Source: Octopus bimaculoides (taxonomy: Eukaryota). From it: a DNA stretch of 64,000 nt. Shown here piece after piece: positions 14,217 to 55,952 of the stretch. The stretch is from contig NC_068988.1 in assembly GCF_001194135.2 (NCBI RefSeq), forward strand, positions 95,785,201 through 95,849,200, given 5' to 3'. The notes under the pieces are model-generated. The model made no database searches. It was given only the letters and a program-made list of their open reading frames with translations, and was not told the DNA's origin. The translations under genes and the position numbers were made by a program. Positions within the stretch are counted from its first letter, which is position 1. Every line of letters begins with the position of its first letter.

Positions 14217-14413
14217 TTAATTCATTACCAGTCTCTTAATTACGGGTGAAAAATCGTTCTGTTTCACTGCTCGTTCGTAAGTCTTTTCTAGGGGAAGAAC
14301 TGTGTCGTCATCAATTTCACTTCGTATGGCCCGTTGATCTAATCCTCTCGAAAGGATTTTCATCAACTGTTCGTCACGGTTTGACACATCCATCGAACTT
14401 CTTTTACCATTTC
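14217..14413 (-). CDS. GGNG: GGNG/EP precursor, coding exon 3 (GN-GKR amidation/cleavage site + C-terminal associated peptide)
   Basis: Acceptor atttcttttctatttcag|GA AAT GGT AAA AGA. Open to TAA at 14219-14217. The three exons sum to 64+39+197=300 nt (99 aa + stop). The last three residues are uncertain because of a possible donor CTG|gtaatg at 14229. Confidence 0.85.
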
Positions 14414-17400
14414 CTGAAATAGAAAAGAAATATAAATATATGTATAAATAAATACATAAAAAGAAAAATGCGGTCAAAATCTATGGAAACTGGCGCTAAT
14501 GAAGAAAACCTTACATTATCAATTTGCCTGTAAGAAATAACAGCCAAATCCTCTAAAAATCACACCATACTTTCTTCAGAAAGATCAGGCATATTGGATA
14601 ATGTTCTCTGAAGTGCATTATAACTAAAAGAGATGGTCATTAATGGAACACTGGTTGTCATCATTAACATATCCGATCAGAATTGGACTGGAGCTAAAAC
14701 AAGAATAACAAGATCAACAACATAATAGGCAAATCAAGCATGGTCGCTCTTTGTGGTTACCTGATTTGCCTGAAATAGCGGTCAAATCTTCCTCTAACGA
14801 AACTCCAACGGTCTTTAAACGGTTTAAATAAATATACAAAGTAATCCTCCTTGTGAAAAGTCAATGATGTAATTTCACCGCGTTTTATCTCTCCGTGGAC
14901 AGAAAAATGAATCTATTTGACTAATCTCGCAGAAAGATCGTCCATTTTCCGTTTACTTTTTACAGCGTACTAAATTGCATATGCATTAGAAATTTATATA
15001 ACTTATGTTTCAAATAATCTAAAATAGATTGCACCGTTTCGTGCACTATACTTAAGCTCTTCCTCCCGATATATATATATATATATATATATATATATAT
15101 ATATATATATAGCGTCTTGTCCCTCTAACTGGTAATTAACATCATGATTTAAAGTCTTCTCCTACCCAGCCTCTTTTTATAGACAGTTACTGTATATCCA
15201 ATTGACTACTCCTTATGTCTTCTTTCCTCCCCGAGGAAAAGAGATACATATGACAATATTTATGACCATACCTAGCATGAGTTGTCAACTCACTCTCGTC
15301 CTTTATACAAAATAGATACAGTCCTCTAGTCTTAGATTTAGTAGTTGATAAAAAGATAAATGAATTAGAAATGAATCACAATCCCTTACAATACTATGAC
15401 CCCAATAGGCTTCGTGCGATTTTGGGAAGTGTAGTCTATTCTTAGCTGCAATAGCGACAACATGAATTTCTTCCATATTCTTGCTTTGTTAAAATATTTG
15501 AGAAAAATTATATTAATGTGTCCTTCTTGTTAAAATTTTGTTCATTTGTTTGTGCAGATGAAGATGACACTGATGTAAATTGATGTAATGATTGCATTGT
15601 TCAATTAAATGGAGCCGCTTGAAACAGTCGTACTGCATCACTACTTGATATCCTTTTGCTTATTTTGATTATATATATACATATATAACATTTAATGTAC
15701 AGAATGTAATGATACGAGCTAACTTTTGACGCGGGACTAGGCATATTTTTCTAACACATCTTGTGTCGCTAAGCGATCTTTAGGCGCTAAGCACTTGGTA
15801 TATTCAATTTACAAATATAAAAGAAATCACGAGAAAAAAAACACGAGGAGAAGGTAATTGTAGAATAATTCATCGGAGGGGGGTCCAAAGTCTGCAAGAT
15901 GGCTGCTCAGTCCGGAGAGGGTGGTGTCCTCCAGTTTACCAAAAGAAATTTGTCCATATGTTTGCATTTGCTGGAAATTTTGGATCTGGAATTCAGTAGT
16001 GATGTGGGATTCGTAGATCTAAAAGGAATATACGACCTTTCAACTTCGCCTAAGTTGCATTTCTTAGATCCATACCATGCGTAGCAAGCCAGTTTCGCGG
16101 GTTTACTTTTGTCGATGTGCCTATGAGGTTTGAAGAATAACTCCACATATATGTTCTTAGTAATTATAGACAACACATCAACGCGACACATAAACGAATT
16201 CGAACAGACATACATATATTTATACATTAGGTTATACAGTTTATTAGTTTCGATGATAAAAAGTGAAACTATCTCTATTAATCGATGCGAAAGTATAAAA
16301 ACCATGTTCCGCGGGTCAGACACGGTGTTAACTGAACAATCTCCTTGACAGAATGAATGATTAACTTTATTTGCATATTTTTATTTCTGTTGGCGACTTC
16401 TTCAATAATTTTCTCTTTGATCATTTGTAATTTCAGAAATGATTGCACCTTAGTTGACTGTCTGCCGCTCTACAAATAACGTTTGTCATATTAAAACCGA
16501 TACAAATTTTGATCTAAACTTAAAAAAGGTGATACATTATTTTCATTATTTATGCTATTTTCTTTACAAACCTTTCCCACCCCCAGAGAAGAAACCCAGC
16601 GATTTCCTTACGAGAGCAGAAAAGTTGTTGGAAAGTAAAACAACACATCAATAAAGATTTAAGACTAAAGTGCCGGGGCACGTAGACAAGAAATGAGATG
16701 AATTAATATACGCACAAACACTCATAAACAGACTCATAAAAACAGTCACACGCACGTATATGTGCATATATATAGTATGTATGTGTGTGTGTGTATATAA
16801 ATATATATGTATGTATGTATATGTGTATGTATGTATATATATATATGTGTGTGTGTGCGCGTGTATATGCATCTATGATTGTGTGCAAACGTGTATATAT
16901 TCTGACAACAATAAACTGCTTCCGTCCGAACTTCTTTTCAGCTGTAAAGTGCATACGCAGAATTTCAAATTGCTGCAGTCAAGCGTAGAAGTAGGTCACT
17001 TACATTAACCAATCGAATCACTTAAATAGATAGATAGATAGATAGATAGATAGATAGATACACACACACACACACACACACACACAGATAGATATATATA
17101 CGCACACATACACAAAACATCGCACGATTGTAGAAAGGGTTCGAACTAGACGGGCTGAATCTTATTGATTTCTATCTGGGACTAAATGAGAATTAGACAA
17201 CAAGGTATAGATGATTGGGAATAAACCAACCCAGTGTAACAATCAGTCGGTCGTTTGTTAGTCAAAGTTCTTTCGTCATTGTTCGCCACCTTTTCCATGA
17301 TTTTGTGACTCTCACTCTCGCTCCAAGATCTGCTATGAGTCTTAGAAAAAGGATGCTAGATGTGTCGAAACAATTGTNNNNNNNNNNNNNNNNNNNNNNN

Positions 17401-17679
17401 NNNNNNNNNNNNNNNNNNNNNNNNNNNNNNNNNNNNNNNNNNNNNNNNNNNNNNNNNNNNNNNNNNNNNNNNNNNNNNNNNNNNNNNNNNNNNNNNNNNN
17501 NNNNNNNNNNNNNNNNNNNNNNNNNNNNNNNNNNNNNNNNNNNNNNNNNNNNNNNNNNNNNNNNNNNNNNNNNNNNNNNNNNNNNNNNNNNNNNNNNNNN
17601 NNNNNNNNNNNNNNNNNTATATATATGTATGTATATATATTTATATATTTATATATATACATGTAGTCGCCAGGGCTCC

Positions 17680-55700: not shown

Positions 55701-55888
55701 ACACGCACGCACATAAACACATACGTGCGTACATACATATACATATATATGCTTTTTTTAAATTCCAACTACATACATGCATACATATATATATATATAT
55801 ATATATATATATATATATATATATATATATATATATATATATATATATATATATATGAATTACAGTTAAGTTTTAAGAGAGCACTTAC

Positions 55889-55952
55889 CTGCATTTGCTA
55901 TTGATAAAAGAATTACAGCAGAAACGAGAAATAGACTGAGCCGAAGAGACAT
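55889..55952 (-). CDS. GGNG: GGNG/excitatory peptide (EP/CCHamide family) precursor, coding exon 1 (signal peptide MSLRLSLFLVSAVILLSIANA + 1 nt)
   Basis: ATG at 55952-55950. 21 codons form a basic N-region, hydrophobic core and A-N-A cleavage motif. Ends GCA G|gtaagt (consensus donor, phase 1), in frame with exon 2. Confidence 0.88.

Follow-up and report, generated by a model that had tools for sequence, protein, structure and literature searches.

The locus analyzed here raises the question of whether a few small coding segments, far apart on the minus strand of an Octopus bimaculoides chromosome, form a neuropeptide gene and, if so, to which family it belongs, where it ends and what has become of its peptide. 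We address this question in a window of 64,000 nucleotides of contig NC_068988.1 (positions 95,785,201 to 95,849,200 of the forward strand). A first-pass annotation had read three exons between 14217 and 55952 as a hidden gene for an excitatory peptide (EP, also called GGNG or GGNamide), easily missed by automated annotation and related to the arthropod CCHamides. In our analysis the locus is very probably the single-copy O. bimaculoides gene for EP, orthologue of arthropod CCHamide. Published work regards EP (GGNG/GGNamide) and arthropod CCHamide as orthologues (PMC6617912, PMC12969411).

The sequence and its splice sites define a minus-strand gene of four small coding exons (64, 39, 185 and 36 nt) spread over 46.8 kb, with intron phases 1, 1 and 0 and a 107-aa prepropeptide as product (Table 1). 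Exon 1 opens with ATG and ends at the donor AG/GTAAGT; its length of 64 nt is also found in O. vulgaris and O. sinensis. Exon 2 lies between the acceptor tttctcatttcag/ and the donor G/GTAAGT, and the following intron interrupts the codon of the second Gly in GGN. Exon 3 is preceded by ttttctatttcag/ at 14413 and ends at CTG/GTAATG, which is the donor used in the O. vulgaris and O. sinensis models. The amino acid sequence of exon 4 shows no difference to either species and completes the C-terminal amphipathic motif of the EP family in a 15-sequence family alignment. Introns 1 and 2 measure 19,337 and 22,099 bp, Ns included, and intron 3 measures 5,040 bp; their O. vulgaris counterparts measure 28,929, 40,196 and 9,959 bp. 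As Ns lie within the introns, the lengths in the window are estimates only. Exons 1 and 2, the start of exon 3, their GT-AG sites and the two phase-1 introns are thus present in the sequence as the first-pass annotation had placed them, and the 300 nt of its three-exon, 99-aa frame do translate to MSLRLSLFLVSAVILLSIANA/AKCNRHNMHACLGGN/GKR...VMN and a stop. Its 3' end was wrong: a fourth exon at 9188-9153 brings the product to 107 aa, and the gene reaches 9153, past the former limit at 14217.

Table 1. Features of the O. bimaculoides EP gene, in window coordinates; promoter, polyadenylation and processing elements are predicted.
Feature	Position	Strand	Content
Coding exon 1	55889..55952	(-)	64 nt; Met1-Ala21 signal peptide and first base of the Ala22 codon
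Coding exon 2	36513..36551	(-)	39 nt; encodes (A)KCNRHNMHACLG(G), the disulfide ring of the mature peptide
Coding exon 3	14229..14413	(-)	185 nt, not 197; (G)N, then G-K-R, acidic spacer with amphipathic motif, end ...SPVIKRL
Coding part of exon 4	9153..9188	(-)	36 nt; AKIILSEESQN and TGA; acceptor tatttcttttag/
Amidation donor and prohormone-convertase site	14400..14408	(-)	GGT AAA AGA = Gly37-Lys38-Arg39; ends the mature peptide
Read-through of exon 3 donor	14217..14228	(-)	GTA ATG AAT TAA = VMN and stop; GTAATGAATTAA
TATA box	56003..56010	(-)	TATAAATA; 58 nt upstream of ATG
Polyadenylation signal AATAAA	9072..9077	(-)	75 nt after the exon-4 stop codon

Both ends of the gene are flanked by putative signals. 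The stretch CTATAAATATTCCGTA around the TATA box has the same letters in O. vulgaris, and the position of this presumptive promoter element implies that the 5' UTR is short and that no exon precedes exon 1. Downstream, O. vulgaris carries AATAAA 79 and 87 nt past its stop codon.

The assignment to the EP family depends on comparisons that go beyond pairwise similarity. A single-sequence homology search matched only the O. vulgaris orthologue, and therefore a family alignment was needed; searching with it retrieves the precursors of TEP-1, PEP, GGNG-1, LEP and EEP-2. A profile HMM built from 54 non-octopod EP precursors scores the octopus protein at 45.5 bits (E 5.5e-16, Z=1) in an alignment that covers residues 5-76 and hence extends beyond the peptide, whereas none of 2,000 shuffles scored above 8.6 bits. 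In the 15-sequence family alignment, no variation occurs at residues K23, C24, H30, C32, G35, N36, G37, K38 and R39; H30, which forms the H-x-C element H30-A31-C32, is invariant in the octopod alignment too. Membership of the octopus protein in the EP/GGNG family is strongly supported by these sequence comparisons. A scan against a local copy of Pfam gave no significant match for the octopus precursor, CCHa1_2 (PF27941) included; it also gave none for Patella P0007, which has a precomputed weak PF27941 match, and the copy may therefore lack the model or the sensitivity.

The gene structure is conserved as well. Intron positions and phases 1, 1 and 0 are common to the chiton Liolophura (exons of 76/42/191/78 nt), the limpet Patella (76/42/206/45), the scallop Argopecten (79/42/251/51), the annelid Owenia (73/42/269/45), Argonauta (193/39/179/39), and O. 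vulgaris and O. sinensis (both 64/39/185/36). From these genes we derive a structural criterion, namely two phase-1 introns, one where the signal peptide ends and one within the second GGN Gly codon, and a phase-0 intron in the C-terminal motif. The conservation of intron position and phase from annelids to octopods provides a cheap orthology test for precursors that are too short or too divergent for BLAST. Together, the profile score and the shared introns bear out the earlier proposal that the gene is the cephalopod orthologue of annelid and molluscan EP.

The precursor has the layout expected of a secreted peptide. Its predicted signal peptide consists of the n-region MSLR, a 14-residue hydrophobic core LSLFLVSAVILLSI with an 11-residue Kyte-Doolittle mean of up to 2.83, and Ala at -3 and -1. 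This signal peptide can be aligned with those of 14 family members, and the cleavage site is predicted from the -3/-1 rule and the family alignment. A single peptide copy starts at residue 22 straight after ANA, with no second C-x-C...G-K-R motif within the 107 aa. The second Cys opens the sequence C-L-G-G-N-G-K-R-S, which comprises x-G-G-N, a Gly as amidation donor and a dibasic site. The signal peptide and the GKR of the first-pass annotation are accordingly present and align with the family.

Judging from sequence and from processing elsewhere in the family, signal peptidase would cleave behind Ala21 (ANA/AK) and a prohormone convertase behind Lys38-Arg39. A carboxypeptidase would then take off Lys and Arg, peptidylglycine alpha-amidating monooxygenase would convert Gly37 into the C-terminal amide of Asn36, and a disulfide would join Cys24 and Cys32. 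The end product would be the cyclic 15-mer AKCNRHNMHACLGGN-NH2, with a calculated monoisotopic mass of 1621.7136 and [M+2H]2+ of 811.864. The peptide would be released from neurons, probably also from gut endocrine cells, and its target would be a class-A GPCR of the EP/CCHamide receptor clade. O. bimaculoides XP_014782347.1 falls into this clade of a published tree and is a candidate receptor (supplement of PMC6617912). In other protostomes, EP/CCHamide serves as a brain-gut signal with an excitatory effect on gut muscle and a role in the regulation of feeding and satiety (PMC6617912, PMC12969411), and the family has been tied to feeding and satiety in Aplysia (PMC12969411).

Does the messenger end where the four-exon model ends it? 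The 12 nt at 14217..14228 most likely belong to the 5' end of intron 3 and enter the frame by read-through, because the 107-aa product is present in a collection of 15 billion proteins in which the exact 99-aa sequence is absent, and because no AATAAA or ATTAAA lies within 368 nt downstream of the read-through stop. It is improbable that the three-exon mRNA is real or predominant, with intron 3 retained and CTG GTA ATG AAT TAA translated to give a 99-aa product ending in VMN. Codons and stop of the read-through segment keep the frame and are unchanged in O. vulgaris, such that this isoform could be translated in both species and may exist as a minor form; the mature peptide is unaffected by the choice of model. 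However, all annotated octopod models splice at the exon 3 donor, a phase-0 intron occupies the matching point of the C-terminal motif in chiton, limpet, scallop and annelid, and the Owenia transcriptome sequence (PMC6617912) runs unbroken across the exon 3/exon 4 junction. Exon 4 moreover supplies the rest of the family's motif and is followed by AATAAA 75 nt after its stop, for which the read-through stop has no counterpart within 368 nt. We therefore retain the four-exon model.

This model is identical to an existing annotation. The 107-aa product matches exactly RefSeq XP_014768932.1, "uncharacterized protein LOC106868263 [Octopus bimaculoides]", and equivalent predicted models exist in O. 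sinensis (XP_029639638.1) and O. vulgaris (CAI9727000.1), both in the same 90% cluster, and in Argonauta hians, all labeled only as uncharacterized or hypothetical. Hence, the gene had not escaped automated annotation. A comparison of 50.8 kb of the window with GCA_001194135.2 chromosome CM046608.1:95792353-95843152 showed 100% identity, and the gene calls there include a 107-aa gene with a span of 46,800 bp. The O. vulgaris and O. bimaculoides loci contain no further gene calls; of the window's 86 ORFs of 100 aa or more, nearly all are translations of microsatellites or N runs, and five other ORFs of the window gave no meaningful match in a Pfam scan. In a contig collection, the three Octopus proteins were found in chromosome-scale genome records only, with no short spliced transcript-type contigs. 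A literature search for LOC106868263, XP_014768932, LOC115214755, XP_029639638 and CAI9727000 found no paper, and one with peptide strings returned a scallop paper only. A venom-mimic reading was dropped, as a cephalopod venom preprint uses GGNG as a reference query only and reports no GGNG-like toxin.

The assembly itself invites the suspicion that unrelated fragments have been joined across N gaps, by chance or misassembly, into an open frame. There are 19 N runs between the first and the last coding exon, all of merely estimated length; those beyond the program's list are at 32094-32103, 34511-35210, 39717-40070, 41189-41932, 42635-42723, 44780-45355, 46476-46547, 48101-48573 and 52727-53358, and intron 3 contains 10715-10830 and 12015-12024. 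Yet every run is intronic and none touches an exon or a splice site, the closest being about 1.3 kb from an exon, and the reading frame across gaps is therefore no issue. Alignment with the gapless O. vulgaris locus gives a single collinear chain (51 blocks, 40.9 kb, 86.4% identity) that spans window positions 60243-3337 without any change of order or orientation and brackets every gap. Exon order, orientation and content are reproduced in the gapless O. vulgaris and O. sinensis sequences (0 N) and in Argonauta. Together with a profile score far above that of the shuffles, the O. vulgaris chain and the models of both species refute an artefact.

The most distinctive part of the precursor is the peptide ring. 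In the octopus mature peptide, AKCNRHNMHACLGGN-amide, Cys24 and Cys32 enclose the seven residues NRHNMHA. Octopod exon 2, with 39 nt instead of the 42 nt of non-cephalopod orthologues, carries a one-codon deletion, which yields a C-x7-C ring. The ring has eight residues and contains Trp in all 54 non-octopod matches, whereas octopods lack this Trp: NRHNMHA contains no Trp, Phe or Tyr, and the residue aligned with Trp is a His (Octopus) or a Lys (Argonauta). Ring sizes in the family are eight in most trochozoans, seven in Novocrania and Dinophilus and six in arthropods (PMC6617912). The seven-residue ring of the octopus, with its predicted disulfide, is within this range of six to eight. An aromatic residue in the ring, Trp in trochozoans, is given as a common feature of the family (PMC6617912). 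Since the octopod ring has none, activation of the canonical receptor cannot be assumed. Both departures from the leech and mollusc peptides, the ring shorter by one residue and the missing Trp, had gone unnoticed in the first-pass annotation. Searches with the family profile, with an octopod profile and with an exhaustive phmmer run over 1.84 billion representatives found no decapodiform (squid, cuttlefish) orthologue.

Comparison with O. vulgaris shows how the precursor evolves. The coding sequence differs at 11 of 324 nt, while the surrounding non-coding DNA is 86.4% identical. Coding dN/dS between the two species is about 0.28, a value derived from only 5.5 synonymous and 5.5 non-synonymous changes. 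Exon 2 is the least conserved exon (5 of 39 nt differ), at about the neutral or intronic rate, which could reflect relaxed constraint on the peptide, and two of the 15 residues of the mature peptide differ. With very few sites in each case, dN/dS is about 0.22 for the peptide segment and 0.18 for the C-terminal precursor region, such that the latter is conserved at least as well as the peptide. In this C-terminal region, a KR site precedes LAKIILSEESQN.

Two interpretations of the unusual ring have to be weighed. One is that the gene is decaying or functionally released, i.e., that the precursor is transcribed but its peptide, minus Trp and one ring residue, no longer signals through an EP receptor and drifts. 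A ring unlike that of all 54 other homologues, the near-intronic divergence of the exon encoding it and the two exchanges in the peptide would fit such a scenario. We nevertheless judge it very improbable, because the frame, all eight splice sites, the two Cys and the elements H-x-C, LGGN and GKR have been preserved in three Octopus species and also in Argonauta, where protein identity has fallen to only about 49%, a mark of long-term purifying selection. In addition, N28 and H30 of the ring are invariant among octopods, dN/dS of the peptide segment is low, if from very few sites, and O. bimaculoides has kept an EP-clade receptor gene (supplement of PMC6617912). The other interpretation starts from the remodeled EP ligand that octopods (Octopus, Argonauta) carry, whose ring residues still change between congeners, and holds that ligand and receptor have evolved together towards a new pharmacology or that the ligand now acts on a different receptor; relatedly, the C-terminal precursor region might yield a bioactive product. 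Such a change of signaling is speculative and we consider it unlikely.

For the EP gene as modeled here, the analysis provides a name and a likely function for an "uncharacterized" RefSeq gene in three Octopus species and Argonauta. It extends the octopus neuropeptide list by an EP/CCHamide brain-gut peptide, just as work is under way to pair the neuropeptide receptors of cephalopods with their ligands, and the shortened, Trp-less octopod ring represents a natural structure-activity experiment on the EP family. The family, its processing, its presence in a cephalopod (Sepia) and the database gene model were all known before, and the result is a useful annotation rather than a discovery. For the presence in cephalopods, Table 1 of PMC6617912 lists a GGNG/GGNamide of Sepia officinalis (Zatylny-Gaudin et al. 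2016) as a member of the EP family. According to this table, the family was therefore previously known in cephalopods, and the octopus gene is not a novelty for them.

Among known systems, deuterostome endothelin and GRP/neuromedin-B are relatives at the receptor level with a shared brain-gut role (PMC12969411). Their peptides have no usable sequence similarity to the octopus peptide: endothelins have two disulfides and no amide, while GRP and NMB have an amide and no disulfide. Orthology with arthropod CCHamide-1 and -2 is accepted via orthologous receptors (PMC6617912). Like the octopus peptide, these have a disulfide ring, an amidated end after G-G/A-x and a single copy just behind the signal peptide, but their six-residue ring has an aromatic-Gly-His core, and their C-terminus is His-amide instead of Asn-amide. 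A further relative is leech LEP (Hirudo nipponia, Q25104; AKCEGEWAIHACLGGN-NH2), whose sequence was given correctly in the first-pass annotation, as the precursor contains AKCEGEWAIHACLGGNGKRS. It shares with the octopus the AKC start, the H-A-C-L-G-G-N end, the following Gly and KRS, and one peptide copy per precursor. The leech ring, however, has eight residues with Trp (EGEWAIHA) instead of seven without, and a propeptide separates LEP from the signal peptide, which the octopus peptide directly adjoins. The molluscan EP/GGNG set comprises TEP-1/2 of Reishia (Thais) clavigera, GGNG-1 of Charonia, GGNamide of Crassostrea and Patinopecten, and apEP/CCHa of Aplysia (KCHGRWAIHACFGGN-NH2). Molluscan EP precursors have the octopus layout of signal peptide, one peptide, GKR, an acidic spacer with L-x-x-(I/L)-L-(R/S) and a C-terminal amphipathic motif, and the octopod precursor, with 107 aa, is the shortest among them. 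Patella, Argopecten and Liolophura have four exons in phases 1, 1 and 0 as in the octopus, with long introns on both sides. All non-cephalopod molluscs retrieved carry C-x8-C with the ring x-G-x-W-x-I-H-A and a 42-nt exon 2, whereas octopods combine C-x7-C and the loss of Trp with an exon 2 of 39 nt.

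The EP/GGNG neuropeptide gene of O. bimaculoides encodes its 107-aa precursor in four exons on the minus strand. The first-pass annotation had proposed three exons (55952-14217) and a 99-aa product. We read these three places directly and then spliced them by script, which reproduced the exon coordinates, the GT-AG sites, the phase 1 of both introns and the translation of the 300 nt, MSLRLSLFLVSAVILLSIANAAKCNRHNMHACLGGNGKRSS...VIKRLVMN*. The 3' end of that model has to be replaced, as its final codons (CTG|GTA ATG AAT TAA) begin with a GT donor and a fourth exon is present downstream. 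The sole close homologue in the first homology search, a 107-aa "hypothetical predicted protein" of Octopus vulgaris, agrees through ...VIKRL and then continues with AKIILSEESQN. Mapped onto its own locus, it occupies exons of 64, 39, 185, and 36 nt with intron phases 1, 1, and 0, and O. sinensis has the same lengths and phases. Furthermore, AATAAA lies at 9077 in the window, 75 nt past the exon-4 stop, and 79 and 87 nt past the stop in O. vulgaris, while no comparable AATAAA-type signal occurs within 368 nt past the read-through stop. The coding span is 55952-9153 (46,800 bp). A long (GT)n microsatellite is found upstream of the TATA box, in O. vulgaris likewise.

Coordinates of features in the window and of repeat matches in the O. 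vulgaris locus (L001)
Feature	Coordinates	Strand	Remarks
(GT)n microsatellite	~56100-56200	-	~90-190 nt 5' of TATA box
TATA box TATAAATA	56010-56003	-	58 nt 5' of ATG
Exon 1	55952-55889	-	64 nt; starts ATG, donor AG|GTAAGT
Exon 2	36551-36513	-	39 nt; acceptor tttctcatttcag|, donor G|GTAAGT
Exon 3 start	14413	-	acceptor ttttctatttcag|
Exon 4, coding part	9188-9153	-	AKIILSEESQN*; acceptor tatttcttttag|
142-aa ATG ORF MATDLERLLIFPLIK...	2919-3347	-	3' of gene
Dispersed repeat, ~170-210 bp	42893-42724, 42626-42419, 31835-31605
Matches to repeat in L001, examples	188-359, 36220-36391, 58646-58817, 6882-7046
N runs with microsatellite edges, examples	5700-6225, 8087-8476, 18340-18376, 23612-24065, 34511-35210, 58570-59113

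Beyond the program's list, nine N runs fall within the span of the three-exon model and two more in intron 3. All of these are intronic and none is closer than ~1.3 kb to an exon. An exon arrangement produced by misassembly is ruled out by 51 BLAST blocks that form one collinear chain (86.4% identity over 40.9 kb of alignment) between window 60243-3337 and the O. vulgaris locus, which contains no Ns; the chain keeps order and orientation and brackets every gap. Hence, uncertainty is limited to the intron lengths, which are 19,337, 22,099, and 5,040 bp in the window and 28,929, 40,196, and 9,959 bp in O. vulgaris. The distance from start to stop codon is 46.8 kb in O. bimaculoides and 49.7 kb in Argonauta hians, and it reaches 79.4 kb in O. 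vulgaris and 80.4 kb in O. sinensis; exon content is identical at all four loci. The shorter O. bimaculoides span may partly result from collapsed or under-estimated gaps, and the O. vulgaris intervals matching the N gaps measure 0 to 3.7 kb, often far from the N count. Many gaps are bordered by (TA)n or (CA)n microsatellites, which show up as YIYIYI or HTHTHT in ORF translations beside X runs; such gaps have the appearance of dinucleotide repeats left unresolved in the assembly.

Gene structure served as a test of orthology. For each of four annotated homologues, we retrieved the genomic locus and placed the protein on it by exact matching. The chiton Liolophura sinensis (exons 76/42/191/78 nt), the limpet Patella caerulea (76/42/206/45 nt), the scallop Argopecten irradians (79/42/251/51 nt), and the annelid Owenia fusiformis (73/42/269/45 nt) each have a gene of 21-48 kb with four coding exons. 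In all four species, intron 1 (phase 1) lies at the last signal-peptide residue before K-C, intron 2 (phase 1) within the codon of the second Gly of GGN, and intron 3 (phase 0) within the C-terminal motif. The octopus gene is interrupted by precisely the same three introns, and the common positions and phases settle both orthology and the four-exon model. Moreover, the Owenia transcriptome sequence (PMC6617912) is uninterrupted across the third junction, thus the third intron is real. No statement of this conserved layout was found in the two EP papers searched on this point.

Sequence comparison places the precursor in the same family. The supplement to Thiel et al. (2019; PMC6617912) supplied full EP/CCHamide precursors, of which 13 from trochozoans were aligned with two octopus proteins. 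Residues K23, C24, H30, C32, G35, N36, G37, K38, and R39 are invariant in this alignment. Also aligned are an L-x-x-(I/L)-L-(R/S) stretch past the acidic spacer and a C-terminal amphipathic motif, whose octopus counterpart, VIKRL|AKIILSEE, requires exon 4. A profile search with the 15 sequences retrieved 58 proteins, among them TEP-1, prepro-PEP, GGNG-1, Ggng 2, EEP-2, and LEP. The LEP precursor contains AKCEGEWAIHACLGGNGKRS, in agreement with the leech sequence given in the first-pass annotation. Against a profile limited to the 54 non-octopod hits, the octopus protein scores 45.5 bits over residues 5-76 (E 5.5e-16 for one sequence), and the top score among 2,000 shuffles is 8.6 bits. Together with the matching introns, this bears out the assignment to the EP/GGNG family.

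The gene had been described as hidden from annotation. However, an exact look-up identifies the 107-aa product as XP_014768932.1, "uncharacterized protein LOC106868263 [Octopus bimaculoides]", in one cluster with the O. sinensis protein XP_029639638.1 and the O. vulgaris protein CAI9727000.1; for the 99-aa version, the protein collection has no exact match. The corresponding locus (GCA_001194135.2 CM046608.1:95792353-95843152) matches the reverse-complemented window at every one of its 50,800 bases, and the gene called there spans the same 46,800 bp. Thus, automated annotation did not miss the gene but left it unnamed. No mention of these protein and gene accessions was found in the literature searched. 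Nor is it the first cephalopod orthologue, since a GGNamide is reported for Sepia officinalis (Zatylny-Gaudin 2016, as tabulated in PMC6617912).

Introns 1 and 2 also contain a dispersed repeat that looks like a SINE-type element; each copy has four to six matches in the O. vulgaris locus at 73-94% identity. The 142-aa ORF lies in a block that shares 90% identity with O. vulgaris L001 98422-99386. A Pfam scan of this ORF gave no match; it may resemble the tail of invertebrate retroelement proteins.

The reading frame, splice sites and conserved motifs are observed; expression, processing and receptor activation are predicted. By analogy with the family (PMC6617912, PMC12969411), the signal peptide would be cleaved after Ala21. 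A convertase would cut at K38-R39, followed by carboxypeptidase trimming, and Asn36 would be amidated from Gly37. With a Cys24-Cys32 disulfide, the product would be AKCNRHNMHACLGGN-NH2, for which we calculate a monoisotopic mass of 1621.7136 ([M+2H]2+ 811.864, [M+3H]3+ 541.579); the O. vulgaris/O. sinensis form AKCSRHNLHACLGGN-NH2 has a calculated mass of 1576.7463. LAKIILSEESQN is a further putative peptide. The mature peptide would be expected to act on a GPCR of the EP/CCHamide clade, to which a published tree assigns O. bimaculoides XP_014782347.1 (PMC6617912). In other protostomes, the family acts as a brain-gut, myo-excitatory, and feeding-regulating signal (PMC6617912, PMC12969411).

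The predicted ring is divergent in octopods. In each of the 54 non-octopod hits, the ring comprises 8 residues including Trp (x-G-x-W-x-I-H-A), whereas the Octopus ring has 7 residues and no Trp, NRHNMHA in O. bimaculoides and SRHNLHA in O. vulgaris and O. sinensis. His or Lys occupies the aligned Trp position in octopods; N28 and H30 are conserved. An exhaustive phmmer search over 1.84 billion representatives added one relative, a partial protein from Argonauta hians (species via PMC12682272, PMC13652810). It carries VKCTKKNLHVCLGGN-GKR, a 39-nt exon 2 and the four-exon structure of Octopus, so the ring change is older than the Octopus-Argonauta split. No squid or cuttlefish orthologue was retrieved by the family profile, the exhaustive phmmer search, or an octopod profile. 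A comparison of the O. bimaculoides and O. vulgaris coding sequences shows 5 substitutions in the 39 nt of exon 2, with 2 amino-acid changes, and 4 in the 185 nt of exon 3; whole-CDS dN/dS is ~0.28, from 11 substitutions only. The ring-coding exon (36513-36551) is the fastest-evolving, and that of the supposedly inert C-terminal precursor region (14229-14413) the slowest. The octopus gene, unnamed in its database entry, adds a somewhat divergent new member to a well-known neuropeptide family, with an exon 2 of 39 nt in Octopus compared with 42 nt in chiton, limpet, scallop, and annelid.
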